The notes: generated by a model from the sequence alone, not told the origin. Shown: positions 5,331 through 62,900, counted from the first letter of the stretch. The stretch: 64,000 bases of DNA from Basidiobolus meristosporus CBS 931.73 (GCA_002104905.1 MCFE01000140.1:62001-126000); one strand, 5' to 3'. Program-made: numbers and translations.

Positions 5331-5635
5331 TTATTATAGCTTTCCTGAGTTTGAGTTGATTTGGGATATGTATTCTTCTGTCAAATGGAAGGTGGGCTCG
5401 GAGTCTGCTTCAAGCTCATATTCCATGTTAGCATAGCATCTATTTCCATTGCCACTGCTGAAATATTGGACTATTTGGTATCATTCAGCAGCTAAAGATT
5501 TACTTAACAATTCTAGACTAGTCTTAGTCACTGTAGGACCTATTTACTGCCTTAACTTTGCCACTTTCTCCAGATATATGATCTTATGATTATTCCCCTA
5601 TAGTCAGGATCAAATTAGCACTATTACCAAACATT

Positions 5636-6367
5636 AGACTTGTTTCATTGGATAGTGCCACATTGAGCCATGAGTGCCAAATGATGCCATAGTGTGCCAG
5701 AGAGGCCAAGTGAGCCTATACTTGGCCACAGAGTGTGAAACATAGCTCTTCATCTTCATGCAAAGCAGCTCCTGTGTTTCACTCATTGTGTTGGAGAAAA
5801 TCCATTTTTTGACCTTTTTTTTTGGATCAATGTTGTGCATGATGTGTAAGAGGACAGAAGGACTGAAGAAATGCATCTGGTACTCAATACCCATGGCACT
5901 CTGAATCTAGCACCTGTAGCTTGTATCATGTCACAAAAATGATTGGCACTATCTTGGTCCACTGATACTACCTGGCACTATAAGTGCTTTATATAGGTTT
6001 TACTTTAGGGCTAATATTTAAATATAGTGCCAGATAGTATCAGTGGACCACAATAGTGCCAATCATTTTTGTGACATGATACAAGCTACAGGTGCTAGAT
6101 TCAGAGTGCCATGGGTATTGAGTACCAGATGCATTTCTTCAGTCCTTCTGTCCTCTTACACATCCTGCACAACACTGATCCAAAAAAAAGGGTTAAAAAA
6201 TGGATTTTCTCCACACAATGGGTGAAACACAGGAGCTGCTTTGCATGAAGATGCAGAGCTATGTTTCTCACTCTGTGGCCAAGTATAGGCTCACTTGGCC
6301 TCTCTGGCACACTATGGCATCATTTGCACTCATGGCTCAATGTGGCACTATCCAACGGAACAAGTCT
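5636..6367. mobile_element. Fold-back MITE (732 bp) of the PHIS family at 44226-47667
   Basis: Ends AGACTTGTT...AACAAGTCT; arms of ~345 bp around a ~40-bp spacer. TSD ATT at 5633-5635 and 6368-6370; the empty site has a single ATT at 10677-10679 in the 3' LTR. Confidence 0.92.
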
Positions 6368-6559
6368 ATTATGTACTAACCCTGAACCTGTTACAGAATG
6401 CTCCTGAATATTGAGAAACCCTCCCTACTTAGTGTTACAGCTGTATTACTTCTACAAAGGTATAAATACTGAGCTTCTTTATGAATAAACTACAGTTCAA
6501 CTTTTATCACTATTTCTTGATAAGTTCCTTATATCCAAATCACTTCTTAAATTGCAACA

Positions 6560-10505: not shown

Positions 10506-10867
10506 AATATTGAGCTATTTGGTATCATTCAGCAGCTAAAGATTTACTTAACAATTCTAGACTAATCTTAGTCACTGTAGGACTCATTTACTGCCTTAAC
10601 TTTGCCACTTTCTCCAGATATATGATCTTATGATTATTCCCTGATAGTCAGGATCAAATTAGCACTATTACCAAACATTATGTACTAACCCTGAAACTGT
10701 TACACAATGCTCCTGAATATTGAGAAACCCTCCCTGCTTAGTGTTGCAGTTGTATTACTTCTACAGAGGTATAAATACTGAGCTTCTTTATGAATAAACA
10801 ACAGTTCAACTATTATCACTATTTCTTGATAAGTTCCTTATATCCAAATCACTTCTTAAATTCCACA
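10500..10867 (+). repeat. Copia-A1 3' LTR
   Basis: Starts TGTTGAAATATT after the PPT; colinear with the 5' LTR once the MITE is removed. Confidence 0.88.
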
Positions 10868-18830: not shown

Positions 18831-21800
18831 CCTTATGCAAATGAACTTGGTCCTGTGGATGGACTCAATCAAGATTGGCCATCATGATCCTGTCAGGAGA
18901 CAGCTATAGTACCAGCAGCTTGAAACTAATGGCCATCAATACAATCTCATAATAGAATTACAATAGCATTTGGCTAATTTCACAGCCAAATAAAGTTAAG
19001 AACATAATGGTGTTTTTGCAGTATTTTACCAAGAGTGACATAGCATTGTTGCAGTCTAAGTGCACTCTACAACTATTTGAGTGAATCTTACTAGCCCATA
19101 TATCCAATTACCCTATGTGTCAAAAAACTTGATTTTGTTTTGATGGCCTTGTTGCATGCCATCCATGATAATATAATGGCAGTATGGCAGCCTACAGATA
19201 GTCCTGTATAATGCTGCTGTACCAACTTACTAAATGGTATTTCCTTTTTCTACCTCTGCTGGTACAACTGAATTATTCCACTATGGAGTCACCCTTCTTT
19301 ATATGCTTACCCACCACCACCATGGGTATTTCACATATTGTTTGAATCTTGAAATACTATTGTCTCCAGCTTATTAACCTCTACAAATGCACACACCTGC
19401 TGCAATTGACATACTTCTATTGCCTAAACTTTACAGCTTTTTAGTGTGACACTTGCAAAGCTGCCATTTACCTTATATTGCTGTTAATATATACCTCTTA
19501 CAAAAATATACTTGGTTGCCACTGCTAATGCCAGGAATAGCTCCTGTATATCTGCAACAAACACTTTGGAATTTAGCCAATATATATTCCTTCTCCCTGC
19601 AGGACTCTAGTCCCCCTCATGAGTGAGCTCTGGCTCATGTTTGTGTGAATTCTGTATTGGATGGTGTAGAACTTGACTAGTGACCAAGAGATTTCTGGCA
19701 CACCTTGGTAGAGTTTTCCTGATAACAGTTGGTTACTTGTCTATGCATTGGGGCTGCTTAGCTTCTTAATTTCATAGGCATAGATGTCTCCTTGTGCAAA
19801 TCTGTCCTCAGGATTATCCACTCTTACTGGCTGTCCTTCATGTACCAGCTCATAACATCTATCACAGACTTGAATGTAGTATTCTTGATGGGATCAAGGT
19901 ATGGCAGTACTGGCAACTTGACGCGTCTTTCTATCTCCTCACACATTGGCTCCATAGGGAACTCCCATAAGGTGAAGCAAGGTCCAATATTCTCAGCACA
20001 CCATGCAAGATGGGGTAGCACATGGATACTGTAGTAGCAGAGACCTACGCATGCAGCTTTATGTCATTAGTGTAGCTGCTCACATTCTGTTGCTAATGCT
20101 TTGCACAAAGGCTGTAGATGCATCAAGTTGCTATTGGTGATTCTCTTCTGAATAAATTTACCTACAATGTCACAAATCACTCCCAATGCTTCCAATGTAC
20201 ACCTGGTAGCTATGGCTTCAGATGGCCACTTGAATATATACAAACTCAGCTCATCCAGTCCTTGAACTTGTATTGTTGCATATGTACATGAATGTTGATC
20301 AAAGCCATGAGAAGTCCGCAGGGTAGAGGATACTCTGTAATATCTTGCCAGTTACTTCATATTTCTCATGTATCTCAAAGGTTGGATTTGGCTTGAAATG
20401 CCCCATGTACAATTTGGTCATCTGTATAGGGATATTGCTGAAAAGTAAATGCATTGCTCCCAGTGGAGAGCTTTTGCTTAAACTGATACTCTCTATTCTA
20501 AGTATTGCTGAACTCCAACTTCTTCCGTTGTAAGACCAATAGCTTATAGCATGCCATCTTTGCTACAATTGCATGCGGACATCTGTATGTTCTCTCTGCA
20601 GAAGGATGATACTCTTGATGTTGGTGTTTGGGTAATAGTAATGTGTGGGAGTTATGGAGTAAGTCCTCTGGATCTTACACATTCAACAGCTATATCATCC
20701 ACTGTGCCAAGAAAAGCCAGTTATCTTGCAGATGACTGTGGTATCTTTAATGCGGTTAATAATATGTGCTTTCACAGGATGGTCATTTACTGTTATCCTG
20801 CTGGAAAGCATAAAAATTTCATTCAAAAATGGATACAGGCAGCTATCCAAATAGGATGGCAATTTAGGCCCAGATATCAGTGGCAGCAAGGGCTGAGGGC
20901 TGAAAACAAGTGGAAAAGAAGCATCAGGCTTCCTGCAGAGTGCCAGCAGGTACAAGCAGGCCATAACAGATGCATTAGAGCTGCATTCATCAAGGAGAAA
21001 ACATAGTTCAGTACAAGAAGCACTCAGACATTGCAGCAGTGAAAGACCTGGCAGTGATAACAGAAAGATAAAGAGGAAAAAGTGTACTCAAGCCAGATAC
21101 AGGGAAGCATAGGAGAAAAGCTGCTGTTCTTGCCAATTGATGCCATAAGCTTGGAATAGACTGAATCCCTTCATAGCCAAGAAGAGCTATCAACAAGAAA
21201 TCAGCAGTTCTCACAAGAGTTGGAAGTGCAGCCAGCTGAGCTACACTCCAGTGAGGTATATGAGTTTGCAGAGAAAGGCAAATTCTCTACCATTGCCTGC
21301 ATGTCCTCAATTGTTTTTGGAGTAGAGATCTCACCAACAGACAAAGTAACAATGCCAAGAACTCAAAAGGTTATTACTATGCCATTCGTGAAATTTTGGA
21401 ACATTAATAGGCACACCAAGAAGTTGCAGCACTTCTTCAAGAGCGGTGCTCAAGAAAACTCACCTGAATATTGCATGGACTTATTGCAAAGGCTAGCAAA
21501 TGAGGAGCTAGGCCTTGCAGTGCCAGCTGAAGACCAGGATATATAGGCACCAGTGAATGAAAAGTGGCACAAAGCTGTAGATTGCCCACCAAAGCTGTGG
21601 AAAAGAGCATTACAGCAGAAATACTTGTTGAGTGGTGGACTTTAATGGAGTTACTTGTTAAGTATGGGGTTGGGCTTCATGTTAGTGTAGGGTATAGGTA
21701 CTTGTATAAATCAGTACACTTGGCAATTGAGGTACAACTAATATTTCAACAGAAACAATCAATTTGTATGCTTGAAGAGTCAGAGAAATGTTTGGATCAT

Positions 21801-33200: not shown

Positions 33201-36200
33201 ATACCTTAAAATAGGAGTTTTAACAGAATACTTTGTAAATCTACTCCATTTGAAGCATGGTATGGATATAGACCAAGTGCAGAACATCTAAGAATATTTG
33301 GGTGTATAGCATATGGCAAGAAACTGCCTGGAAACCAGCCAAACTTGAACTAAAAAGTGTAAAGTGCATATTTTTGGGCTACTGCAATGAGAGTGCAGCA
33401 CACAGACTCTACAATACCAAAGGAAAGGCACTAATCAAGTCCAGGGATGTGTTGTATGATGAAATTCTAAATTTTTGTAAGATATGACAGCAGATGATGA
33501 TAAAAATCTGATCTCAAGTCCACCAATTGTCAGGATTGAATCAGAACAAAACAATGAAAGTTTTTTCACTCCAGAGGACTCTTCAACCATAGTTTAGCCA
33601 GAATCAGTGCCCAGGAATATTCTAGAAGTGATCATTCCAGTATCAGATGCCAGGAGATCCAATCAGACAAGAAATAGACCAAAATTACTATATCAATGAG
33701 GGTGCAAACTTAGCCTATGCCTATTCAGTCCATATTGATGAGATCCAGACTGTAAAAGAGGCCCTAAATAGTCCTCAGACAAAGTTTTGGAGATCAGCAA
33801 TGACTGATGAATATCAGGCCCTGATGGAAAATCAAACTTGGGACTTGGTCAAATTACCAATCAACCAAAAATCAATTGGATGCAGATGGACTTTAAGACA
33901 AAATGCAAGGCTGATGATACAAGTGAAAGATAAAAAGCAAGACTTGTGACCAAAGGATACTCTCAAACAAACAGACTTGACTATACTGAGACCTTTGCAC
34001 TGGTAGCCAAGTTTAATTCCATCAGATTAATATTGGCTATTGCAGCCAAATATAGGTTTTTTATTCATCAAATGGATGTAAAAACGGCATTTTGAATGGA
34101 GAACTTGATGAGGATGTGTATATGGACCAGTCTGATGGGTTTTTTGACCATGATAATCCCCATTTGATCTGCAAGCTTATAAAGTCTCTGTATGGTTTAA
34201 ACAATCACCAAGAGCCTTCAATTGCAGGATAGATTCTTATTTGGAATCTTTGAATCTCAAAAGGGGTAATGCTGACTATAATATATACTATAAGCCAGAT
34301 AGAGCGGATCCAGTTTTATTAGCTCTACCTGTGGATGATCTCATTATAGCCACCAATAACCTAGAAGCATTGGAAGCGACCAAATCCAGCCTATCTAAGG
34401 AGTTCAAGATGTCCAATCTAGGAGAACTCAGTTACTACTTACGGATTAAGTTCTCCATAGACAGAAGTACCCAGACTATCACCCTAAGCCAATCCAAGTA
34501 TATTCAAGATAAACTAAAGAAGCACCAAATGGAAGACTGTTAACTGGCAGTTGCTCCAATGTAGATACATCTTAACTTGGTCAAAACTCAATCAAATCAA
34601 GAGAGCTAGGTGCCATCTGAAAGCCCTGCCTTCCTTATCAATCTATAGTTGGCATTCTGATGTATATCATGCCTGGAACATATCCAGATATCTCATATTC
34701 AGTGGGAGTTGTCAACCAGCATAATCAGAACTATGGATCTGATCATATTGCAGTAGTAAAGTGGATTTTTGGATACCTAAAAGGAAATACTGATATCTAC
34801 TTGAGATACACTTATAAGGATTCAGAACAGGATCTTGTGGGATACTCTGATGCTGATTGGGGACAAAATTTAGAAGACAGAAGATCCACCACAGGATACA
34901 CCTTACTTGACTGTAAAGGAGCAATTTCATGAAATTCAAGATAACAACCAACCATAGCACTTTCTACCACAGAGACAAAGTGCATGGCAGCCTGTGATGT
35001 TACAAAAGAAGCAATGTGGTTAAGAAAGATTTTCACAGATATAGGCCTATGTTAAAAAAATCCTATTACTTTATTTCAAGATAATCAAGGTTGTATACAG
35101 TTAGGTAGAAATCCAACTTTTCATACTAGAACTAAGTACATAGATATTAGGCATAATTTCATATGTAAAGATATAGAGAATAACTTAGCTAGCTTAGTTT
35201 ACTATCCTACAGATGAAATGATTGCAGACATATTTGCCAAGCCATTAGCTAGAGACAAGTTTGAACATCTTAGGTCAGAGTTAGGACTAGTCAGTATGAA
35301 CATTTAGCTGAGAGGGGTGTTGTAAAAGTTTGTAATTCTACCCAAATATTCACCTAACTTAGTCACTTAGATCATTAACTTCAAATCCTAGAGAATACTG
35401 ACTAAATTTCTTGTTAGGATTTACTTAGAATATTTTCACCAAAATACCAGGTGCCCAGAACATGAAAATTCTCAAGGTTGTCCAAACAGCCCCAAGCTTT
35501 GCACACATGTTATTGGGACCTTCCTTAATCAATTCTATGTGTTTGTAATGCCAAGACCATATAAAAGTATAAATATTACTTTTACATTCAATATATCATT
35601 AAGCAAATTCAACATAATCTACTTGTCCTCCCAATCACTTCCAATATCTCCAAGACTCTTATAACAAAAACAACATTCACACTCTGGATATATTCCAGTA
35701 ATACCCCATCTAAAGAAGCTCTTGCAGTCCAACAAGTACTGCAAAGCTTAAAGTACTGCACTTAGTATTAATCAAGCACCAACATATCCAATATATTCAA
35801 TGGCAAACTTTACAAGCAGCTAAGAAGCAAGGGCTACTTTGAAGGTATGTATTACTATGCCTTTGTTTTAGCACTTGATGAGTTCTCATTAAGCAAGTAC
35901 TCTATCAGCAAATCCTGCTAGCCACTGATTCTCATCAACCTGAATTTGCCACCTATTTTACCATATCTGGGCAAAAATCTGATGGTGGTCTCACTGGTAT
36001 CTGGGCCTAAAGCACCTTACTACCTGGATAGCTACCTGCATCTATTTCTGGATGAATTTTGCATGCTTTCCAGCAGGATAACAGTATATGACTACCACAT
36101 CAAAGCGCATATTATTATCTGTATTGGAGTTACCCCAGCCATCAGCAAGCTAGCTAGCTTTTCTGAGCACCATTCATGGTATTGTAGTCAAATGTGTGAG

Positions 36201-41600: not shown

Positions 41601-44600
41601 AGAAGAACATGAAGACAACCTTTCAATCCTCAGATGTGACTCAATTTTCAACTGTACTTACCTATACAAGTCCTGATACCTTACACTAACACTAAGCCCA
41701 ACCCCACACTCAACAAGTAACTCCATTAAAATCCACCACTCATTAAGTATCTCTGCTGTAACACCCTGTTTCCATGACTCTGACAGGAACCCCATGGCTT
41801 TATGTCATTGTTCATTCACTGGTTCCCACATATCCTGGTATTCAGCCACACTGCCAGGTCTAGCAACTCATCAACCAGTCACTGCAGTAAGTCCTTGCAA
41901 TATTCTGTTGTAAGAGTCTTGGAGATAATTAACTAAACTGTATGCATCAAAAGAAAGAGCATTGGGATCAGAGAGTGCAAGAATTTATATAGAACCAATC
42001 AAAAGCCACTTTTGTGTTGTTGTAGGACAAACTCTGACCAAGCTTTTTGTGATGTTGGGGGTGAAATTTTTTTAACTTTCTTTGCATGGTGTCCTCAAGA
42101 CATTGATATCTCCTAGTTCTGGCATTCAAAACTTGTGATGGCCTTTTGACAGGATTATTGCAATTATTTTACACAGGGGGCTATATATCATAAAGATAGT
42201 TGCTATGGCACAATACTTTGCAATTCTACTTCATCAAAGGTATGGTATGACTATAATTCAACGCTATGAAAAATAATTTGGTCCCATGGGTGGATCTAAC
42301 CCAGATCAGCCATCAAGATCCTGTTTAGAGACTGTCATAGTACCAGCAGCTTGGAATTAGTGACCCTCTTAACAACATTATAACATGATCACAAAGGTGT
42401 TTTGCAAATTTTGCAACCAAATAAAGGGATAAAACATGACAGATTTTATTGGTGCTGTGACAATAATTCCATGTTAATGTTGCAGTCTTTTAGCACTCTA
42501 CAACTATTTTAAGTGGATCCAACTGGCCAGGACATCCAATTGCCTTATATGGCAAGAAACTTGATGGTATTTTGATGGCCTCACAGCATGACTCCAATGG
42601 CATTACATTGGCAGTATGATGGTCCACAGCTGGTTCTGCATAATGCTATTGTACCAATTTACCAAATGGTAATTCCTTTTTGTACCTCCCCTTGTACATT
42701 TCATATATTCCACTGTAGAATCACCTCCTCTTTATTTGCTTACCCACTACTACCCTGGGTATTCCACATATTTTTTGAATCTAAAAATACTATGGCATCC
42801 TGCTTACTAAACTCTACAAATGTGCATACCTGCCACAATTGATATACTTCTATTCCTCAACTTTAGGGCTTTTTAGTATGATACTTGCAAAGTTGCCATA
42901 TACCTTGTACTGCTGGTAGCAAATACATCTTGCAAAGATATGCTTGGTTGTTGCCACTTCTGCCATGAATACCTCCTGAATATCTGCAAGGAACTTCTTG
43001 GTATTTAGCCAATATACTCCTTCTCCCTGCTGTATTCTAGTCCCCCTTATAGGTGTGCTCTGGCATTTGTTTGTGTGAACTCCGCACTGAATGGTGTAGA
43101 AGTTGGCTTGTGACCATGGGAAGTCTGGCATACCTTGGTAGAGTTTCCTAATAATGATTAGTTGCTTGTTGCACCCAACCCAACTTTGCATTACTTAACT
43201 GATTACCCACACATTGGGGCTGCTTAGCTTCTTAATGCTATAGGCATAGGTGTCTCCATGTGCACATTTGTCCTGAAATTTTCCAACTCTTCCTGGCTGT
43301 CCTGCATGTGCCCACTCATCACATCCATGATGAACTTGAAGGTAATATTCTTGATGAGACTGGGATAGGGTAGTGCCTGCAACTTGACTTGTCTTCCTAT
43401 CTCCCCACACATCTACTCCATAGGAAACTCCCACAAGGTGCAGCAAGGCTTCATATTCTCCACACACCATGCAAGATGGCGTAGAGTATGGGTACAGTAG
43501 CAGCAGAGATCTACATGCTCATCTTTATGTTTGTAGTATAGCCGCTCAAATTCTGCCACAAACTCCTTGCACAACAGCTGTAGATACATCAAGTTGGTAT
43601 TAGTGATATGCTTCTGGATAGATATTCCAACAATGTCCACTTATGACCCCCAATGCTTCCAATGTACTCTTGGTAGGAATGGCTTCAGAATGCCACTGAA
43701 TAAATACATATCTAATTCATGCAGTTTGTGCATTTGTACTGTGGCATAAGCATATGCATATTTATTGGAGCCCATGAGAAGTACTTAGGGTAGCGGACAC
43801 TCTGTAATATCTTGCCCATTCTCTCAGATTTCTCCAGTACCTCAAAGAGTTCATTTAGCTTGAAATGCCCCATGTGCTACTTGGTCATCAGTATAGGGAT
43901 ATGGCTGAAAGCAAATGCATTGCTCCCAGTGGAAAGCTTTTGCTCCAACAGATACCCTCTATCTTAAGTGTCTCCAGTTTCCAATTGAATTCATATTCTG
44001 ACCAATGGCTTATAGCTTGCCAACTTTGCTGCAATTGCATGCTGACTTCTCTACATTCTCTCTGTGATAGATGATATTCTCAGTGCTGGTGTTTGGGTAA
44101 TATTAATGTGTGTGAGTTATGGAGTAAATCCCCTGGTTTTCACACATTTGACAGCAATACCATCCATTGTGCCTGGAAAAACCTGCTATCTTGCTGATGG
44201 CTGGGGTATCTCCACTGCAGTTAATAGACTTGTTCCACCGTACCGTGCCAGGGCGCGCAGCGCAATCCGCGGTTGCAAAGAATGATTGGGCGCAATATTA
44301 TAGCTACCAGAAGGCAGGATTGTTCTTGGACGATTTTGCACTATGCGGGACAATCTTGCACACTATGGCACAATCTGACACGATGAGGTTGGCGCGGAAG
44401 ATCACGCCAACTTGTAATGCTTGCATCACGTGCGCAATCGGATACCGCTATAATGGCAGGTAAAATCTGGTATTTGGATATGTTTCTTTAATGTAAATGG
44501 AAATAAATGTGTATCACACTATAAACTATACTGATACTTACCATTTTGGTTACCCTCACTCCAATTGGACGGTATCTCAGTGGTTAATTGGTCCAAAAGT

Positions 44601-44969
44601 ATCCTGAAGCTGGCAGACCCCAATTGGCTCATTGACTACTGAAAAAGCTACCTGATTTGCCATCAAATATCCCATTTTGCCCATTGAGCAAGTAAATCCC
44701 TGATCCTAGTGATTGGGCAAGGTGTCATAGCTAGCACGCAAGCAATTGTGTAGGTGCAAAACAGATCCAATAGCTGCACTGGTATTACAGATGACGTATA
44801 TATATGCAGGGTGTTTATTTATAGGGGTTCTGTCTCAAATGTGAGACAACCTTGATATTACTTATATCAAAAATTTGATGATCACTGATTTGCGATGGCT
44901 TGATTTGGATCGCAAAAAAAAAAGGGTTGTCAGGATCATTACGAATGTGAGCGATTCAAAGCGATTGCA

Positions 44970-45299
44970 TCATCTTCTCCTGGGTTTTTTTCTCACAGGG
45001 ATTACTACTGAAGCATTTGGTAGTGACTCACTTTGCACACCTATACTACTTCCTGGCTGACTATCATCTTGGCTACTTGTGTATTTGTAGTCAGTATTTT
45101 GCCTCCTAGTTGATGAGTGCAATGCTGCAGCTTGGCCGCGCTGAATCGCTCTGACTGAACCAACTGAACCAACTGAACCGGCCTGTAGTGCCACGCGCTG
45201 ACGCGTTCTTTTACTTGCCAAGGGCTCCGGTGGTTGAGTCACTTCATGTTGGTCATCATCAGTCAGTTCACCAGAAGTAACTTGCTGATGGTCAGGCAA
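44970..45299 (-). CDS. Low-complexity ORF ending in a basic NLS-like tail; possible 3' exon of the accessory gene
   Basis: 110 codons open from a TTG; S/Q/D-rich; ends VRKKPRRR; 104 nt downstream of ORF 45404-46240 in another frame. Confidence 0.35.
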   Translation of the reverse strand: MPDHQQVTSGELTDDDQHEVTQPPEPLASKRTRQRVALQAGSVGSVGSVRAIQRGQAAALHSSTRRQNTDYKYTSSQDDSQPGSSIGVQSESLPNASVVIPVRKKPRRR

Positions 45300-45403
45300 A
45301 ACGGCACGTGCAGGCGCGCCTTGACACGTTGAGATGGCCCTTGGCTGAGTTCAATGTGATGCCGCATGTTGACGCGACTTGGTCCGCTCCAATGGACTTG
45401 TGT

Positions 45404-46240
45404 CTAAATGAGCAGTTTGGCAAGTTCTGGTAGTTTTGCTCTGAAGCGCGCGCGTTGACCCAACACACGTTGACTCAATGTGCGTGACTCAACGCGGGGC
45501 GTCCTGGTAAAGGGTGTTGGCGTAGTCTGGACTGACGTGCGCCGGCGCGCTGTGGTTGCAAGAGATGGTAGGGAATCCAGCAAGGTGTGCTGGCGCGATC
45601 TGGACGATGTTGCTTGCGGTCTGTATTCTTCCTCCTGAAGCTCACCATCTGATTCCTCAAGGTATTCACTTACCCTCTGTCTGATACTTTGGAGCTGTTG
45701 CCTGGATGAGTGCTGTGTATATTGCTCTTGGAAGCCACTTAGCTCTACTAATATATCACGTAGTACATTAGTCATTTGAGGCAAAAACTCATTCAAAATC
45801 TCTTTGTTTCCCAAAGTTGAGGCACAAACGGACACGTCCGGCCCGTACTGTGCAAATTGCACGCGAAATTGTTCCTGCACGGCTTCCTCGTCAAATCCCC
45901 TCACTCTCAGCTCATTCTTGATTTCAATACTTGTCTTGTTATATATCTTTTTACATACATCGGCTGGCATCTTGATGTAGAACTCATGCCACAGCTTTCT
46001 ACTCAAATTCTTCCATCTTTGTCGACTCTCTGAGGTATCTAGTTCTGCTAGATTAATCAGTAGTGCCCAAATATCTGTATGAAGGCTCATCATAGACACT
46101 TGGGCCATACTAAAATCATTTGGCGAGAACTTGAACGGAGCCAACATCAACTTTTCCGGTCTGGACCGCACTTGTGAGCTGGGGGATGGGTTTTGTCTGG
46201 GTTGTACTAAAGATGAGTTGAGGCTTGGTATGGGGACCAT
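45404..46240 (-). CDS. PHIS accessory protein (278 aa), putative DNA-binding; family not identified
   Basis: Uninterrupted ATG ORF divergent from the transposase. ESRQRWKNLSRKLW resembles a Myb/SANT/MADF recognition helix; disordered R/S/T-rich tail. Confidence 0.65.
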   Translation of the reverse strand: MVPIPSLNSSLVQPRQNPSPSSQVRSRPEKLMLAPFKFSPNDFSMAQVSMMSLHTDIWALLINLAELDTSESRQRWKNLSRKLWHEFYIKMPADVCKKIYNKTSIEIKNELRVRGFDEEAVQEQFRVQFAQYGPDVSVCASTLGNKEILNEFLPQMTNVLRDILVELSGFQEQYTQHSSRQQLQSIRQRVSEYLEESDGELQEEEYRPQATSSRSRQHTLLDSLPSLATTARRRTSVQTTPTPFTRTPRVESRTLSQRVLGQRARFRAKLPELAKLLI

Positions 46241-46599
46241 AGCAACGGATTTGGATACTTATACAGCAGTATATTGGCATCAACCTGGTCTTATATGAAA
46301 TATATATGAAAACTAAAGTGATTGTTGAATTTTCCATATATTATGCATGATGCATCTCGGATCGCGTTGACACGGATCAGATTACATCAATTGCAGATTT
46401 CCTATTTGATTATAGACCTATGATTAAAGCATCAATAAAAGTACCAAGGCATTGTTTGCGGATGATTTTTGCGACATAATAATGGGATACATGGCAATTG
46501 ATGGAGATTTAACCATAATGTGTTAAAAATCAGATAAATAACGCAGATCGCGCCGAATCAATTCAAACCGCCACCATACGATCATCCATCAATTTTAAT

Positions 46600-47484
46600 A
46601 TGACTTACTCATCTGAATGGTCTTTTCTCATCAATCCCATCACTACCACTGGATTTCCTTTTGACACACTGGAGGAGATCTATTCCAAGTACTGTGGACC
46701 ATCAACCCCAATCTACTCAAGGAGATCCCTTGTTAAGCTTCTCTGCTATTACAAGAACTATTGCCCTACAAGGTTTCATCCCACCATCCATGGCAACAAA
46801 AGTCCTAGAAGCTTTCATTCCCAGCTGACAGCAATGGAGAACCACCTTGCAGAGGGTATGAATGACTTAGAGCAAGCTTGGAATACTAGGTTCAGAAGCT
46901 CCAATAGACTTCCATATCCCAGAGTGTTCAGCAACAGGTTCCATATCAGGAGTATTTTGGATACCTTCCCAGTGAGGATTAACAGACCTTCTAGAGGGCA
47001 GAGGCACTTTTATTCTGGCAAGTACAAGGCACACTGTGTGAAGTTTCAAGCACTGTCTGACATTGAGGGTAACATCATCTGGTTTAGTGGGCCATTTGCT
47101 GGAAGTAGGCATGACAAAGCTCTCTGGGTAGAGAATCATCCTGAATTCAGTAGAGGGGAGAAATGTATGGCAGACTTGGCCTATATAGGAGAGGATTGTC
47201 AGAGATTAGGATGTATTACAGCTTATAGGAAGCCAAGGAATGGTGTGCTTAGCAGGAAGCAGAAGCTCTACAATGAGATATTTAATCATTTCAGAGTAAG
47301 GGTAGAGCACACATCTGGATATTTGAAGAGATTCAGCATATTGGCAGGTAAATACAGAGGAAAGTCATATATAGGAGAAAACAGCAGAATAGGTAAAATA
47401 GTTAAGATACTTATCAATGCACAGTATGTTCATACAAGAAGATATCCACTGAGAGAAATGTGTCTGGAGCATTATGAAGAGTAA
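46600..47484 (+). CDS. DDE transposase, DDE_Tnp_4 (IS5/PIF-Harbinger) type, 294 aa, intact
   Basis: ILDTFPVRINRP, YSGKYKAHCVKFQ, GPFAGSRHD, ADLAY, YNEIFNHFRVRVEHTSGYLKRFSIL. No stop or frameshift; AATAAA overlaps the stop. Confidence 0.93.
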   Translation: MTYSSEWSFLINPITTTGFPFDTLEEIYSKYCGPSTPIYSRRSLVKLLCYYKNYCPTRFHPTIHGNKSPRSFHSQLTAMENHLAEGMNDLEQAWNTRFRSSNRLPYPRVFSNRFHIRSILDTFPVRINRPSRGQRHFYSGKYKAHCVKFQALSDIEGNIIWFSGPFAGSRHDKALWVENHPEFSRGEKCMADLAYIGEDCQRLGCITAYRKPRNGVLSRKQKLYNEIFNHFRVRVEHTSGYLKRFSILAGKYRGKSYIGENSRIGKIVKILINAQYVHTRRYPLREMCLEHYEE

Positions 47485-49800
47485 ATAAAGCAAGGAAAGC
47501 ACTATTCTGAGCAACATAAGTAAGATTGAGTAAAATTACCAGTAACTGTATCATACCACTGGCATCATGGTAGAAATTATAGTGCCAGATGGTGCCGTAG
47601 AGTGCCAGATCAATCCGGCACTATAAACTGGCTGGCACTATGTGGCACTATCCAACAGAACAAGTCTAATAATATGGGCTTTTACATGCCAGTCATTTAC
47701 TGTTATCCCACTGGAAAGCATACAAAACTCATCCAGCAATGGATATAGGTTGTTATCCAGGTTGGATGGTGACTTAGGCCCAGATACCAGTGAGACTACC
47801 ATCAGATTATTGCTTTGATACTGTAAGATGGGCAGCAGACTCAGATTGATGAGAATCAGTGGCTGGCAGGGTTTGCTGGTAGAGTACTTGTTTAATGAGA
47901 GTCCATCAAGTGCCAAGGCAATGGCATAGTAATACATACCTTCAAAGTAGCCCTTGCTTCTTAGCTGTTTGCAATGTTTGCCATTGATTATATTGGATAT
48001 GTTTGCGCTTGATTGATACTGAGTGTGGTACTCTATATCTTAGCAATATTTGTTGGACTGCATCAGCTTCCTCAGACAGGGTATGACCGGAATATATCTG
48101 GAGTGTGAACAGTGTTTTACCTCAATGGTGGTAAATTCCTGACAATTTGGACAGGTTAATTGATAGCATTTTTGGATGTGAATGCCATGTAACTGTTGAC
48201 ACATGCTGGAATCAGGACAGTCTCTGGATCATATGTTGCCAGCCACATGGTGGTTGTCCGCTTGTACCATGTATATGGTAAGTTGCATCCCAGTATGATT
48301 TTGGCAAGAAGTAGTAATAAATCCTCAAAGCCTCCATTACTGATATTAGTGGAAACACGCCACTTCTCTAGCCACAACATTACATCATTCATCAGTAGAT
48401 GGATTGCTGGGCTCACTTGGCTCTATAAAGTATCCTTGGCATTTGTTTCAACAGGTGTTGTCTAATTGCATATAGGGATTTTACTGGGCTCATATGTGGT
48501 ACTGTTGTAAGGGGAGATAGGCTGAAAATCCATCAGTGAGCATTCTTTGTCAGAGCTATCACTCTGCCTGCCATATTCAGAATGCTGATGTGAGCCTAAA
48601 GGTTCCACAAACTCACCTGACACAGTTTGTGTAAGGTGACAAAGATGGCCAGGTGCCAATATAGAATTATCAACTGACTGGCAAGATATTGTTGGTATGG
48701 TATTGACCAATGAATAGTCAAAAATGACTTGGGTGGCAAAACACTGGTCTTGATCCTTGTAATACTTCCTATGCTGTATGTTTGCTTCATGGCTGAGAGG
48801 CTTGCCACAATAGCTACATGGTCTTTTTTCTCTTCTCTTACAGTGTTGAGTCAAAGTAGTCTTGTCTATGGGGCAAACAGTTTGACCTTCAACAATGTAA
48901 CGCTATTATATCACTTTTTGGTCAATACTCATGTGAACTTAAGACAGTCTTGTATTTGAGACATTGCACCTATATTAATGTAAGATTCAATGATGACCCA
49001 CCAAAATAAGCATTATAAATAAAGTTGTGGCACTGCATACACACAAATATGTAACACTATTTCCCCCTTGGTTTGACTCACTTCCTTATATATGCTGCCA
49101 AAAAATAAAGCAAAGTTGTCTGGTTCCTAACCAAACCCCACCACTGATGGCAACAGACAAATGCTTGGACAACAGCTTGCTTTGACATTCAGTGCAACAA
49201 GCAGGGCTACATCCAAAAAGGCCCTGTGGACAGTGTGCCCATTGAAGGTAATAATGCGGACTCCTCAGGCTCTCAGTCAAGTAGGCAACTGAGAACCTCT
49301 GCAGAGCCACAAGCTGACCATTATGCTCAGGCAGATGAGAATGTAGCAAATGCAGTACCCTCAGTTGAAGACCAGCAAGTGGCTGTCATAACAGCACCAC
49401 CACCCATGTTAGCAAGTATGTTGTCTGCTCATAACAAAGCATTAGTGAACCAATTAGGTGCAGTGGCTGATAGGATAGATGCAATGGCCCAGAGAAATAA
49501 GGGAATAGTCCAGAAACAGAATGAGCAGATAATATGTGTAGAGCCATGAATATTGCTGGTAGAGAAAGCAGTATCTTTGCTGCAAAGAAGGAACCCAAGT
49601 AGCTCAATGTCACAGCCAAGAATTGAGCCATTTCCCAATGTAACAGCAGAGGAACACTGTACAGTCTTTGATGCACAACAACAGTGCCCAAAGATGTAGC
49701 CCACAGAAAAACCTATCACAGCATGGAGGGAGACAATGTGGTGGTTATACCAAAGCCTAAAAATCAAAAGACCTTGAAATCTGCAAAGCCATTTTAGTGG

Positions 49801-50240
49801 TGTCAAAGAGACACCCACTAACAGATGTGCTCATTCCCATATTTTCCACCTCCCTGTTTCTCTACTACACTTATTTTAGTTTTATCACATTTGTCTTACT
49901 TGATCAGTACTATCCCATTAGCCGGCTGACTATCACATCAGCTTACCTTATTGCATAAGTTATCCCTTACTTTATGTAAGATTACTAGCTGTAAGTGCTT
50001 TGACATTAGGCAAGTACCCATGCCAATACCTGTGACACATGATCAAACTGTGTCACCATCCCTACCATTTCTATACCATATATGGTATCCCTATGTTATG
50101 CAGGTTTCAAAGTACTGATTCCTGATTGGTTGGATGTGCTGTGCCCATACCTACTTAGAATTCTCTTAGCTCACTCTGATGTCATTAAGATTTCTATTGA
50201 TCTCTAGAACCTTCTGGAGCACCATGATTAGTGATCACTT
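49801..50240 (+). repeat. LTR-like family C, partial
   Basis: Starts TGTCAAAGAGACACCCAC; similar to 62237 onward; inserted at the equivalent CACTA position. Confidence 0.6.
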
Positions 50241-58034: not shown

Positions 58035-60996
58035 GAATCACCCCTCTTTATTTGCTTACACACTACTACCTTGGGTATTCCACATATAGTTTGAATCAAA
58101 AAAACTATAGCCTCCTGCTTGCTAAACTCTACAAACATGTACACCTGCCACAATTGACATACTTCTATTACATCAACTTTAGGGCTTTTTAGTGTGATAC
58201 TTGCAAAGTTGCCAGATACCTTGTATTGCTGGTATCATATACATCTTGTAAACATATGCTTGGTTATTGCCACTTCTGCCATGAATACCTCCTGAATATC
58301 CGCAAGAACTTCTTGGAGTTTAGCCAATATATTCCTTCTCCCTGCTATATTCTAGTCCCCCTTATAGGTGTGCTCTGGCTTTTGTTTGTGTGAGTTGCAT
58401 ATTGAATGGTGTAGAAGTTGGCTTGTGACCACAAGAAGTCTGGCATACCTTGGTAGAGTTTTCCTCATAATAATCAGTTTCTTGCTGCACCCAACCCAAC
58501 TTTGCATTACTTAGCTGATTACCCATGCATTGGGGCTGCTTAGCTTCTTAATGCCATAGGCATAGGTGTCTCCATGTGCACAATTGTCCTCAGTATTTTC
58601 CAACTCTTTCTGGCTGTCCTGCATGTGCCAACTCATCACATCCATGATGGACTTGAAGGTAATATTCTTGATGAGATTGGGCTATTGCAGTACCTGCAAC
58701 TTGATTTGACTTCCTATCTCCTCATACATCTGCTCCATAGGAAACTCCAAAAAGGTAAAGCAAGGCCCAATATTCTCCACACACCATGCAAGATGGAGTA
58801 GAGAATGGATACAGTAGCAGCAGAGATCTACATGTTCAGCTTTATGTTTGTAGTATTACCGCTCAAATCCTGTCACAAACTCCTTGCACAACAGCCATAG
58901 ATGCATCAAGTTAGCATTGGTGATATGCTTATGAATAAATATTCCTACATTGCCCACATATGAACCCCAATGCCTCCAATGTACTCTTGGTAGGAATAGC
59001 TTCAGAATGCTACATGAATAATCCCATATTTAGTTCATCCAGTCTGTGCATTTGTATTGTTGCATAGGCATATGAATATTAATTGGAGCCCCTGAGAAGT
59101 ACTTAGGGTGGTGGATAATCTGTAATATCTTGCCAATTCTTCCAAATTCCTCCAGTATCTCAGATGGCTCATTTAGCTTGAAATGCCCATGTTCAACTTG
59201 GTCATCAGTATAGGGATATTGTTGAAAGGCAAATGCATTGCTCTCAGTGGAAAGCTTTTGCTCCAACAGATACCCTCTATCTTAAGTATCTCCAGCTTCC
59301 AAATGATCCCATATTCTGGCCAATGGCTTAAAGCTTGCTAACCTTGCTGCAATTGCATGCTGACTTCAGTACATTTTCTCTGTGATAGATGATGTTCTCA
59401 GTGTTGGTGTTTGGGTAATATTAATGTGTGTGAGTTATGGAGTAAATCCCCTGGTTCTAACAATATGCACTTTTACATGCCAGCCATTTACTGCTATCCT
59501 ACTGGAAAGCATACAAAACGTATCCAGCAATGGATACAGGAAGCTATACAGGTTGGGCAGTGATTTAGGCCCAGATACCAGTGAGACTACTGTCAGATTA
59601 TTGCTTTGATACCATAAGATGGGCAGCAGACTCAGATTGATGAGAATCAATGGCCAGCAGGATTTGCTGGTAGAGTGCTTGTTTAACAAGAATCCATCAA
59701 GTACTAAGGCAAAAGCATGGTCATACATACCTTCAAAGTAGTCCTTGCTTCTTAGCTGTTTGTAATGTTTGCCATTGATTGTATTGGATATGTTTGCACC
59801 TAATTGATACTGAGTGCGGTACTGTATAGCTTTGCAATACTTGTTGGACGGCATCAGTTTCCTCAGACATGGTATGAACAGAATATATCTGGAGTGTGAA
59901 CAATGTTTCACCTCAATGGTGGTGAATTCCTGACAATCTGGACAGGTTGCACTGGTAGCATTTTTGGTTGTGAATGCCATGCACTGCTAACATGTGCTGG
60001 AATCAGGACAGTCTCTGGATTGTATGTTGCCAGCCACATGATAGTGTTCCATCCTGGTATGATTTTGGCAAGAAGTAGTAATAAATCCTCAAAGCCCCCA
60101 TTACTGATATTAATGGAAATGTTCCACTTCTCTAGCCACAACATTACGTCATTCACCAGTAGATGGATCACAGGGCTCACTTGGCTCCATAGAGTGTCCT
60201 TGGCATTTGTTTCAACATGTGTTGTCTCATTGCATATAGGGATTTGACCAGGCCCATATGTGGTACTGTTGTAAGGGGCAATAGGCTCAAAATCCATCAG
60301 TGAACCTTCTTTGTCAGTGCTATCACTCTGTGTGCCATATTCAGAAGGCTGATATGAGCCTAAAGTTGTCACAGATTTACCTGACTCAGTTTGTGTAAGG
60401 TGACAAAGATGGCCAGGTGTTAATATAGGAGTATCAACCATCCAGCAAGATAATGTTGGTGCGGTATTGACAAATGAATGGTCAAATATGACTTGGGTGG
60501 CAAAACACTGGCCGTGATCCTTGTGATACTTCCTATGCTGTCTGCTTGCTTCATGGCTGCAAGATTTGCCACAATAGCCACATGTTCTTTTTTCTCTTCT
60601 CTTACAGCATTGAGTCAAAGTAGTCTTGTCCATGGGGTAAACAGTTTGACCTTCAACAATGTAACACTTTTATACCACTTTTTGGTCAATAGTCATGTGA
60701 GCTTAAGATAGTCTTGTATTTGAGACATTGCACCTACATGTATGTAGAATTCAATGCTGACCCACCATAGTAAGCATTATAAGTAAAGTAGTGGTACCAC
60801 ATACATGTATATGTAGCACTATTTCCCCTTTGGTTTTACTCACTTCCATATATATGCTGCAAAAAATAAAGTAAGGTTGTCTGGTTCCCAACCAAACCCC
60901 ACCACTGACAGCAACAGAAGAATGGTTGGACAATAGCTTGCTTTGACAATCAGTGCAACAAGCAGGGTTTCATCCAAAAAAGGCCCTGTGGACAGT

Positions 60997-61665
60997 AGAC
61001 TTGTTCCGTTGGATAGTGCCACATTGAGCCATGAGTGCCAAATAGTGCCATTGCGTGCCAGAGAGGCATGGCAGACCTAAACTTGGCCCCAGAGTGTGAA
61101 ATTTAGCTCTGCATCATCATGCAAAGCAGCCCCTGTGTTTCACCCATTGTGTTGGAGAAAATCCATTTTTTGACCTTTTTTTTTGGATCAGTGTTGTGCA
61201 GGATGTGTAAGAGGACAGAAGGACTGAAGACATGCACCTGGTACTCAATACACATGGCACTCTGAATCTAGCTCCTGTAGCTTGTATCATGTCACAAAAA
61301 TAAATGGCACTATTTTGGTCCACTGGTACTATCTGGCACTATATTTAAATATTAGCCCTAAAGTAAGACCTATACAAAGCACTTACAGTGCCAGATTCAG
61401 AGTGCCATGTGTATTGAGTACCAGGTGCATGTCTTCAGTCCTTCTGTCCTCTTACACATCCTGCACAACACTGATCCAAATAAAAAGGTCAAAAAATGGA
61501 TTTTCTCCAACACAATGGGTGAAACACAGGGGCTGCTTTGCATGAAGATGGAGAGCTATGTTTCACACTCTGTGGCCAATTTTAGGCACACTTAGTCTCC
61601 CTGGCACACTTTGGCATCAAATGGCACTCATGGCTCAATGTGGCACTATCCAACGGAACAAGTCT
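60997..61665. mobile_element. Fold-back MITE (669 bp), second copy
   Basis: AGACTTGTTCCGTTGG...CCAACGGAACAAGTCT; TSD AGT at 60994-60996 and 61666-61668; empty site with a single AGT at 49232-49234. Confidence 0.93.
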
Positions 61666-62236
61666 AGTGTGCTCATTGAAGGTAATAATGCAGACCCCTC
61701 AGGCTCTCAGTCAAGTAAGCAATTGAGAACCTCTGTGGAGCCGCAAGCTGACCATTATGCTCAGGCAGATGAGAATGTAGCAAATGCAGTACCCTCAGTT
61801 GAAGACCAGCAAATGGCTGTCATAACATCACCACCACCCATATCAGCAAGTATGTTGTCAGCTCATACCAATGCATTAGTGAAGTAATTAGGTGCAGTGG
61901 CTAATAGGATAGATGCAATGGCCTAGAGAAATCAGGAAATTGTCCAGAAACAGGATGAGTGGATAATATGTGTAGAGCTATCAATATTGCTGGTAGAGAA
62001 AGCAGTATTTTTGCTGCAAAGAAGAAACGCAAGTAGCTCAATGTCACAGCAAATAATTGAACTATTTCCCAGTGTAACAGCAGAGAAACACTGTACAGTC
62101 TTTGAAGCACAACAACAGTGCCCAAAGATATAGCCCACAGAAAAACCTATCACAGTGTGGGAGGGAGACAATGTGGTGATTATACCAAAGCCTAAAAATC
62201 AAAAGACCTTGAAGATCTGTGAAGCTGTTGTATTGG

Positions 62237-62900
62237 TGTCACAGTGACACCCACTGACAGATGTGCTCATTCCCATATTTTCTACATCCCTGTTTCTCTA
62301 CTACACTTATTTTAGTTTTATCACATTTGTGTTACTTGATCAGTACTCTCCCATAAGCCGGCTGACTATCACACCTGCTTACCTTATTGCATAAGTTATC
62401 CCTCACTTTATGTAAGATCACTAGCTATAAGTGGTTCAATATTAGGCAACCACCTGCACCAGTGCCTGTGATACATGATCAAACCGTGTCACCATCCCTA
62501 CCATTTCTATACCATATATGGTATCTCTATGTTACACATGTTTCAAAGTAATGATTCCAGATTGGTTAGATGTGCTGTGTCCCTTAAAACCTTCTTTTAA
62601 CTGCTGGTGGATTTTACAGTTGTTTTGACTTTGGAAGCTTTAGTACATTGTCATCTCAAAGGACGCTAAACCCAGCACATACTTCTGTTAAGACACCCAC
62701 TAAGTTAGGGATTGTGGCTCAGTAGTTTTTGCTTGACAAGCTTGTGGCTTTATTCTCCATCACATTATGTTAGAGACAGAGCCCAAGTATTCCTAGCCAG
62801 CTTTTGCTAGAGGTTATTGCACCCAGTGAACATCCAACACACAAAACACTTGAGAAGTGTTGGATGTATTTCTCCCTTGGACTTATACGCCACCATACTA
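62237..62900 (+). repeat. LTR-like family C (~660 bp)
   Basis: Starts TGTCACAG; flanks TTGG/TTGA; uninterrupted host sequence at 39635-39670. Confidence 0.6.

Follow-up and report, generated by a model that had tools for sequence, protein, structure and literature searches.

What kind of DNA transposon occupies positions 44226-47667 of a 64-kb stretch of the Basidiobolus meristosporus CBS 931.73 genome (GCA_002104905.1, MCFE01000140.1:62001-126000), and does it form a mobile system with two short elements nearby that share its termini? The whole stretch of 64,000 nucleotides is referred to here as the window. Judged by its ends, its target duplication and its gene content, the element is very probably an autonomous-type class II transposon of the Pangu group (Harbinger2 of Repbase) within the PHIS superfamily, lodged in a degraded EnSpm/CACTA-like repeat. 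Han et al. (2015, Mob DNA 6:12, PMC4482050) defined this group by 5'-ANT-3' target-site duplications (TSDs) that are confirmed by paralogous empty sites, by terminal inverted repeats (TIRs) of 11-40 bp that usually start with AG or GG, and by autonomous candidates with an average length of ~3487 bp. The transposase in that definition is a PHIS-type DDE protein (DDE_Tnp_4 or DDE_Tnp_1_6) without other domains, and most of the 34 families have a motif-free second open reading frame (ORF) of 170-592 aa (PMC4482050). The equivalence of Pangu and Harbinger2 of Repbase is given by Kojima (2025, PMC12730594).

Ends, gene layout and target duplication

The DNA transposon at 44226-47667 measures 3442 bp and has inverted termini with AAT on either side. 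Its transposase ORF on the plus strand and a second ORF (ORF2) on the minus strand point away from each other across a 359-bp spacer. Its parts are listed below, together with what they share with two foldback miniature inverted-repeat transposable elements (MITEs) in the window and with L001, a related locus.

44223..44225: left copy of the TSD, AAT; present as a single copy in the empty paralogues at 36114-36116 and 20758-20760
44226..44255, plus strand: left TIR, starting with AGACTTGTTCC and carrying a GTGCC motif at position 20; equal to the right end over 10 bp and to the MITE ends over 11 bp
44970..45299, minus strand: low-complexity open frame of 109 aa downstream of ORF2, with a basic RKKPRRR tail at its end and no Pfam match
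45404..46240, minus strand: ORF2, 278 aa, presumed accessory protein; an orphan, predicted to be all-helical, CpG-rich (34 CpG)
46241..46599: divergent intergenic region of 359 bp, AT-rich and CpG-normal; putative shared promoter
46600..47484, plus strand: transposase of 294 aa, DDE_Tnp_4, with the triad D121/D192/E236
47577..47651: subterminal cluster of TAGTGCC and GGCACTA in inverted arrangement; candidate protein-binding sites that are also kept in L001 and at the ends of the MITEs
47638..47667, minus strand: right TIR; its position 11 is T, against C in the left end and the MITEs, which amounts to a CpG-to-TpG change
47668..47670: right copy of the TSD, AAT

Identity between the two TIRs is perfect across 10 bp (AGACTTGTTC) and amounts to 73% across 30 nt. 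The left TIR and three of the four MITE ends contain CCG at the place where the right TIR has CTG (47656-47658), and it is this single CpG-to-TpG change that cuts the perfect repeat to 10 bp. Within the spacer, ATAAATA (46534) and GATCGCGCC (46546) together span 46534-46554, ~50-65 bp upstream of the transposase ATG, and have their counterpart at L001:125-150. Kept between families that are 63% identical in protein, the two motifs are likely core promoter elements. The 109-aa frame downstream of ORF2 could be an additional exon, but could also be non-coding.

The target rule can be read from three insertions, that of the coding element and those of the two MITEs, which are arranged as follows.

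5636..6367: foldback MITE of 732 bp with arms of ~345 bp that are 96% identical; ATT at 5633-5635 and 6368-6370; empty site at 10677-10679 (97% identity)
60997..61665: foldback MITE of 669 bp with arms that are 91% identical; AGT at 60994-60996 and 61666-61668; empty site at 49232-49234 (93% identity)

All three insertions sit in repeats, and uninterrupted paralogues are therefore found within the window itself. Each paralogue aligns over the junction without a gap and has the triplet once, which includes both empty sites of the coding element (36114-36116 and 20758-20760, one triplet copy each). With AAT at the coding element, ATT at the MITE at 5636-6367 and AGT at the MITE at 60997-61665, the target duplication is a 3-bp A-N-T. 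In total, five gapless empty sites were counted for the three insertions. The AGT duplication excludes readings as TWA, CWG, TNA or a 2-bp AT.

These observations agree with an earlier interpretation of the locus made from its nucleotides alone (the sequence-only reading). That reading had proposed a two-gene PHIS element at 44226-47667, of which the ends, the TSD, a transposase with its triad and the two-gene layout were all seen. It had also named AAT, ATT and AGT as TSDs with empty paralogous sites, for all of which gapless single-triplet paralogues were found, and had considered the rule unlike the canonical TWA, with which the AGT duplication is indeed incompatible. Its statement that no other mobile gene set in the window is uninterrupted holds as well, the other ORFs of at least 180 aa being Copia and Gypsy fragments.

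Remains of retroelements (Copia and Gypsy) and of EnSpm-like DNA transposons make up the rest of the 64-kb window. The coding element is inserted in a degraded Transposase_21 (tnp2) repeat and has Transposase_21 fragments on both flanks. Two copies of this degraded EnSpm-like repeat, ~88-90% identical, lie at 43626-44225 plus 47668-49832 and at 58943-62268. As one copy holds the 3.4-kb element and the other the 669-bp MITE, the two act as empty sites for each other. Large expansions of both PIF/Harbinger and EnSpm elements, counted at the superfamily level, have been described for Basidiobolus genomes (Muszewska et al. 2017, PMC5751038).

The transposase and the divergent second gene

The transposase matches DDE_Tnp_4 (PF13359) with E=1e-22 and has no other domain according to Pfam. 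It aligns end to end with relatives of 276-296 aa, and the gene is for this reason regarded as complete and without introns; the compact, intronless 294-aa DDE_Tnp_4 transposase of the sequence-only reading is thereby upheld. In an alignment across 23 relatives, neither D121 nor D192 varies, and the conservation of E236 is at least 90%. An AlphaFold2 model built with the alignment of relatives reached a predicted local distance difference test score (pLDDT) of 91 and a predicted template modelling score (pTM) of 0.90. In this model D121 lies in a strand block (116-127) and E236 within a helix (219-242); D192 is placed between a strand (188-190) and a short helical turn (about 193-195). This context agrees with the one that Han et al. 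describe for Pangu, in which the first D stands between strands, the second at a strand/helix transition and the E in a helix (PMC4482050). Comparison of the model with the PDB by Foldseek gave no significant match, and the top rows, weak as they are, consist nearly entirely of DDE transposases and integrases, among them Metnase, ISCth4, Tn5 and Mos1. Likewise, a sequence search of solved structures with the transposase returned no match.

An exhaustive HMMER search yielded 1493 relatives of the transposase at E<=1e-3. The closest of these are proteins of 276-296 aa on short contigs, the first with 63% and the next with about 40% identity. A profile search found 7 proteins, of which the sole named one is cyanobacterial, and the nearest ESM Atlas clusters are eukaryotic, contain DDE_Tnp_4 only and have a length of about 305 aa. 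Exact look-ups of the transposase and ORF2 proteins found no record of either. Several distant relatives (P0008-P0011, P0013, P0014, P0016, P0019, P0022, P0028, P0029 and P0040 in alignment A3) carry a W-rich C-terminal tail of ~60-100 aa. These tails look Tudor/Agenet-like (a weak PDB match to a DUF724 protein, E=0.81) and that of P0011 is chromodomain-like; such tails may target chromatin and are absent from the transposase in the window.

Related loci in other sequence sets show some of the same structural features. L001 (63% identical, a 1250-bp Logan contig) ends 7 bp before the expected terminus, and has TAGTGCC/GGCACTA subterminal repeats as well as ATAAATA and GATCGCGCC upstream of its ATG. 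No mention of SRR949943, the source of the closest relative, was found in the literature. L002 (39% identical, from an NCBI assembly) has the terminus AGAGTTGTTC, with 9 of 10 bases as in the element, followed by ATT. L006 (32% identical, metagenomic) is an element of 3879 bp (L006:326-4204) with a 32-bp TIR at 97% identity that starts with AGAGTTGT (AGAGTTGTATCC); it contains an intron-split transposase and, upstream of it, a divergent orphan ORF of 313 aa that is unrelated to ORF2. A second copy of L006, L008 (99.7% identical), again has a different flank. A strict search of the fetched related loci for elements that combine AG/GG TIRs with ANT TSDs found none.

The second gene named in the sequence-only reading, a divergent 278-aa ORF beside the transposase, is present at 45404-46240 on the minus strand. 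At 278 aa it exceeds the longest ORF in all 500 dinucleotide shuffles of the left half of the element (maximum 207 aa), and based on this length ORF2 is probably a real gene. Its function as a partner in transposition is presumed because of where it lies and because elements of the group tend to have two genes. Alternatively, ORF2 might not be a cofactor but a gene that is carried along as a passenger, was captured or has a regulatory function, for instance one tied to the CpG-rich state of the left half, and the transposase could act alone as in bacterial IS5. This alternative seems doubtful to us. It would fit the lack of a Myb/SANT or other domain, the lack of homologues near related transposases, and a CpG content and arginine codon use far from those of the transposase gene (13 CGN arginine codons against 0). 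Pfam and NCBIfam gave sub-threshold noise and no domain for ORF2, a word-indexed protein search gave no homologues, a feature search of the ESM Atlas nothing usable, tblastn against 20 related transposase loci no hit, and BLASTP against the upstream ORF of L006 no similarity. The single-sequence AlphaFold2 model of ORF2 is all-helical and of low confidence (pLDDT 58), and with this low-confidence model neither Foldseek against the PDB nor a shape search of the Atlas found a meaningful match. A check for Myb/SANT found no Pfam match; a very divergent trihelix is conceivable. Against a mere passenger stands the fact that most Pangu families possess a second, domainless ORF of 170-592 aa, and that divergent genes around a shared intergenic region are the usual arrangement of two-gene PHIS elements. 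A predicted complex of the transposase and ORF2 scored 0.27 against a mark of 0.34, a value that speaks neither for nor against binding.

MITEs, CpG content and mobility

If the element works as its parts suggest, the 294-aa DDE transposase would recognise the AGACTTGTTC termini and the subterminal TAGTGCC repeats, excise the element and reinsert it at A-N-T triplets by way of a 3-nt staggered cut, the repair of which would create the 3-bp duplication. For the protein encoded by the divergent 278-aa ORF, the analogy with Harbinger elements and their second protein suggests an accessory role. The two foldback MITEs would be non-autonomous riders with the same termini and target rule that are moved in trans.

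Both the 669-bp and the 732-bp element are short and non-coding, and they have the termini and the target rule of the coding element, as expected of MITEs. Over their outermost 35 bp, three MITE ends agree with the right end of the coding element at 32/35 positions (91%, E=3.6e-7), and the fourth, on 5636-6367, at 30/35 (86%). All four MITE ends thus resemble the right end, and the left end shares 11 bp and one GTGCC motif with them. Outside the terminal ~35 bp, the MITE arms (~330 bp) are unrelated to the coding element. The proposal in the sequence-only reading that the element has a MITE family of its own is therefore retained for the termini (32/35 bp) and the common ANT rule, and abandoned for everything beyond ~35 bp, where no likeness was found. 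Most simply, the MITEs would have been moved in trans by this transposase or by that of a close sister; a sister family could equally have moved them. The two MITE copies are ~92% identical to one another.

Outside the element the ratio of observed to expected CpG (o/e) is extremely low (0.07) and TpG/CpA is in excess (~1.36). Such a loss of CpG from the degraded repeats (Copia, Gypsy and EnSpm-like) would fit methylation and deamination directed at CpG. The sole CpG-rich patch in the 64 kb is formed by the left 2374 bp of the element, with an o/e of 0.78 and 91 CpGs at 44239-46579. Not one CpG is found at 46580-47595, a stretch that begins 21 bp ahead of the transposase ATG and extends 112 bp beyond the stop. 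In the transposase gene, 0 CpG stand against 38.6 expected and 28 of 28 arginine codons are AGA or AGG, while half of the arginine codons of ORF2 (13/26) are CGN. L001 is split in the same manner (o/e 1.0 upstream, 0.03 in the ORF), and so the CpG-free transposase gene is, on this comparison, a family trait and not the decay of a single copy. The more distant L002 has normal CpG throughout. In the left half, the kept CpGs suggest a copy that is young or protected.

Perhaps the CpG partition is an evolved design rather than a by-product of age, in which the transposase gene has been purged of CpG in response to CpG-directed methylation and mutation, and in which the CpG-rich half (left end, ORF2 and promoter) is kept free of methylation as long as a copy is live and decays fast once it is dead. 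We consider this idea speculative and rather improbable. If it were true, the purged gene would escape the very process that has wrecked all other repeats in the window.

A different explanation of the coding element and its MITEs would be that the former is an intact-looking but silent relic, and that the latter were moved by a sister PHIS family elsewhere in the genome. The restriction of the match between MITEs and element to ~35 bp, and the likeness of both MITE ends to the right end only, would be explained in this way. In addition, the MITE copies are ~92% identical with an o/e of 0.03-0.09 and therefore not fresh, and L001, a sister family, has similar termini. However, both ORFs of the coding element are intact and its duplication is perfect, and of the compared sequences its right end comes nearest to the MITE termini (27 of the first 28 bases). 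The 91 CpGs left in its left half, against an o/e of ~0.07 elsewhere, also argue for a young or protected copy. A silent relic is possible but, in our judgement, unlikely. The system of autonomous-type element and MITEs may be active at present.

Position among known transposon groups

Compared with the published description of Pangu, the element has a domain-free PHIS DDE transposase, ANT duplications with empty sites and TIRs that start with AG. Its length of 3.44 kb is close to the group mean of ~3.49 kb, and its motif-free ORF2 of 278 aa falls between 170 and 592 aa. Its TIR is near the lower limit of the Pangu range, with 10 bp within the copy and 11 bp when the left end is compared with the MITE ends. 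The link between ANT and Pangu, which the sequence-only reading had drawn, is borne out by the group definition and by Table S3 of the same paper in TSD, first TIR bases, length and domainless ORF2 (PMC4482050). That reading had also named, as an outcome that would refute it, a place inside a well-described family with the same ends and partner; in structural traits, Pangu is such a group. As the element agrees with this described group, the finding is of an ordinary, known kind.

Several points weigh against this assignment or against the system as outlined. Membership in the Pangu clade would follow from structural hallmarks and not from a tree with named references. With only 10 bp, the perfect TIR is at the bottom of the published range (11-40 bp). 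ORF2 is without homologue, domain or confident fold, and the upstream ORF of L006 is unrelated to it. The flanks of L006 are ACT and TCA, with no matching duplication. Finally, the window contains one coding copy, and the MITE copies are ~8% apart, which leaves recent movement unsupported.

Canonical PIF/Harbinger transposons with their Tourist-like MITEs, such as PIF/mPIF of maize, Ping/Pong with mPing of rice and Harbinger3_DR of zebrafish, are known systems close to the element. They have in common with the element the superfamily, the Pfam family, two genes, a 3-bp TSD and MITEs that share termini and target rule alone. They differ from it in their target, which is TWA (TAA/TTA) and not ANT, and in their second protein, which is Myb/SANT-like, a feature not detected in ORF2. 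The Nuwa I/II and ISL2EU/Spy groups also belong to PHIS and have two ORFs in most families. Neither the TSD of Nuwa I/II (CWG or C|TNA|G) nor its Myb_DNA-bind_5 partner is found in the element, and the same is true of the TSD of ISL2EU/Spy (AT or none), its THAP/HTH_Tnp_4 transposase and its YqaJ partner.

The element could belong to one of these three groups if its duplication had been misread, and such an error would find some cover in DDE_Tnp_4 being common to all PHIS groups and in AAT and ATT being AT-rich like TAA and TTA. This is highly unlikely, since AGT is not readable as TWA, CWG, TNA or a 2-bp AT, the boundaries are set by gapless empty sites, and Pfam finds neither THAP nor HTH_Tnp_4 in the transposase and neither YqaJ nor Myb in ORF2. 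With AAT, ATT and AGT as TSDs, a canonical TWA duplication was rejected. True termini of GACTTGTTC with a 5-bp T-A-N-T-A duplication are scarcely credible and were rejected for the window, as the TAATA on both sides of the coding element that results from assigning the outer A and T to the flank has no equivalent at the two MITEs (CATTA against TATTA, CAGTA against TAGTG), the empty sites of which read C-ATT-A and C-AGT-G with only the inner three bases doubled.

Bacterial IS5 elements share the DDE_Tnp_4-type catalytic core, and IS5 relatives have the ANT target and adjoin Pangu in the tree of Han et al. (PMC4482050). Identity of the transposase to plasmid and IS5-family proteins is nevertheless at most 34% over about half of the protein length, and the 47 bits that it scores with the NCBIfam IS5 model fall short of the cut-off of 140. 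IS5 elements have a single gene and reside in a prokaryotic replicon; the element in the window has two genes, is surrounded by eukaryotic repeats and has eukaryote-like relatives. Contamination by a bacterial IS5 was rejected based on the NCBIfam score below the cut-off, the partial nature of the plasmid matches and the surroundings of EnSpm-like elements and long terminal repeat (LTR) retroelements.

Relative to the Pangu group, the element stands at the compact end of the range for its transposase (294 aa) and has a perfect TIR of just 10 bp. It is further set apart by its near-perfect foldback MITE of 0.7 kb and by the sharp partition into CpG-free and CpG-rich halves. The fungal hosts reported for the group, Melampsora, Puccinia, Talaromyces, Tremella and Tuber, are all Dikarya (PMC4482050), and none of the 15 species listed there belongs to Basidiobolus (Zoopagomycota). 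For a PHIS branch that has seldom been studied, the element would be a tidy case with both boundaries known, in a host that is apparently an early-diverging fungus. Its two genes are open, a MITE matches it, and the empty sites within the window establish the A-N-T rule. Only 2 of the 34 Pangu families were judged potentially active (PMC4482050), and for this reason a first Pangu transposition assay, and work on the role of the domainless second protein, could reasonably begin with an intact copy that has both genes and a short rider. The element leaves known transposon biology unchanged, and its host lineage is new to the published Pangu list.

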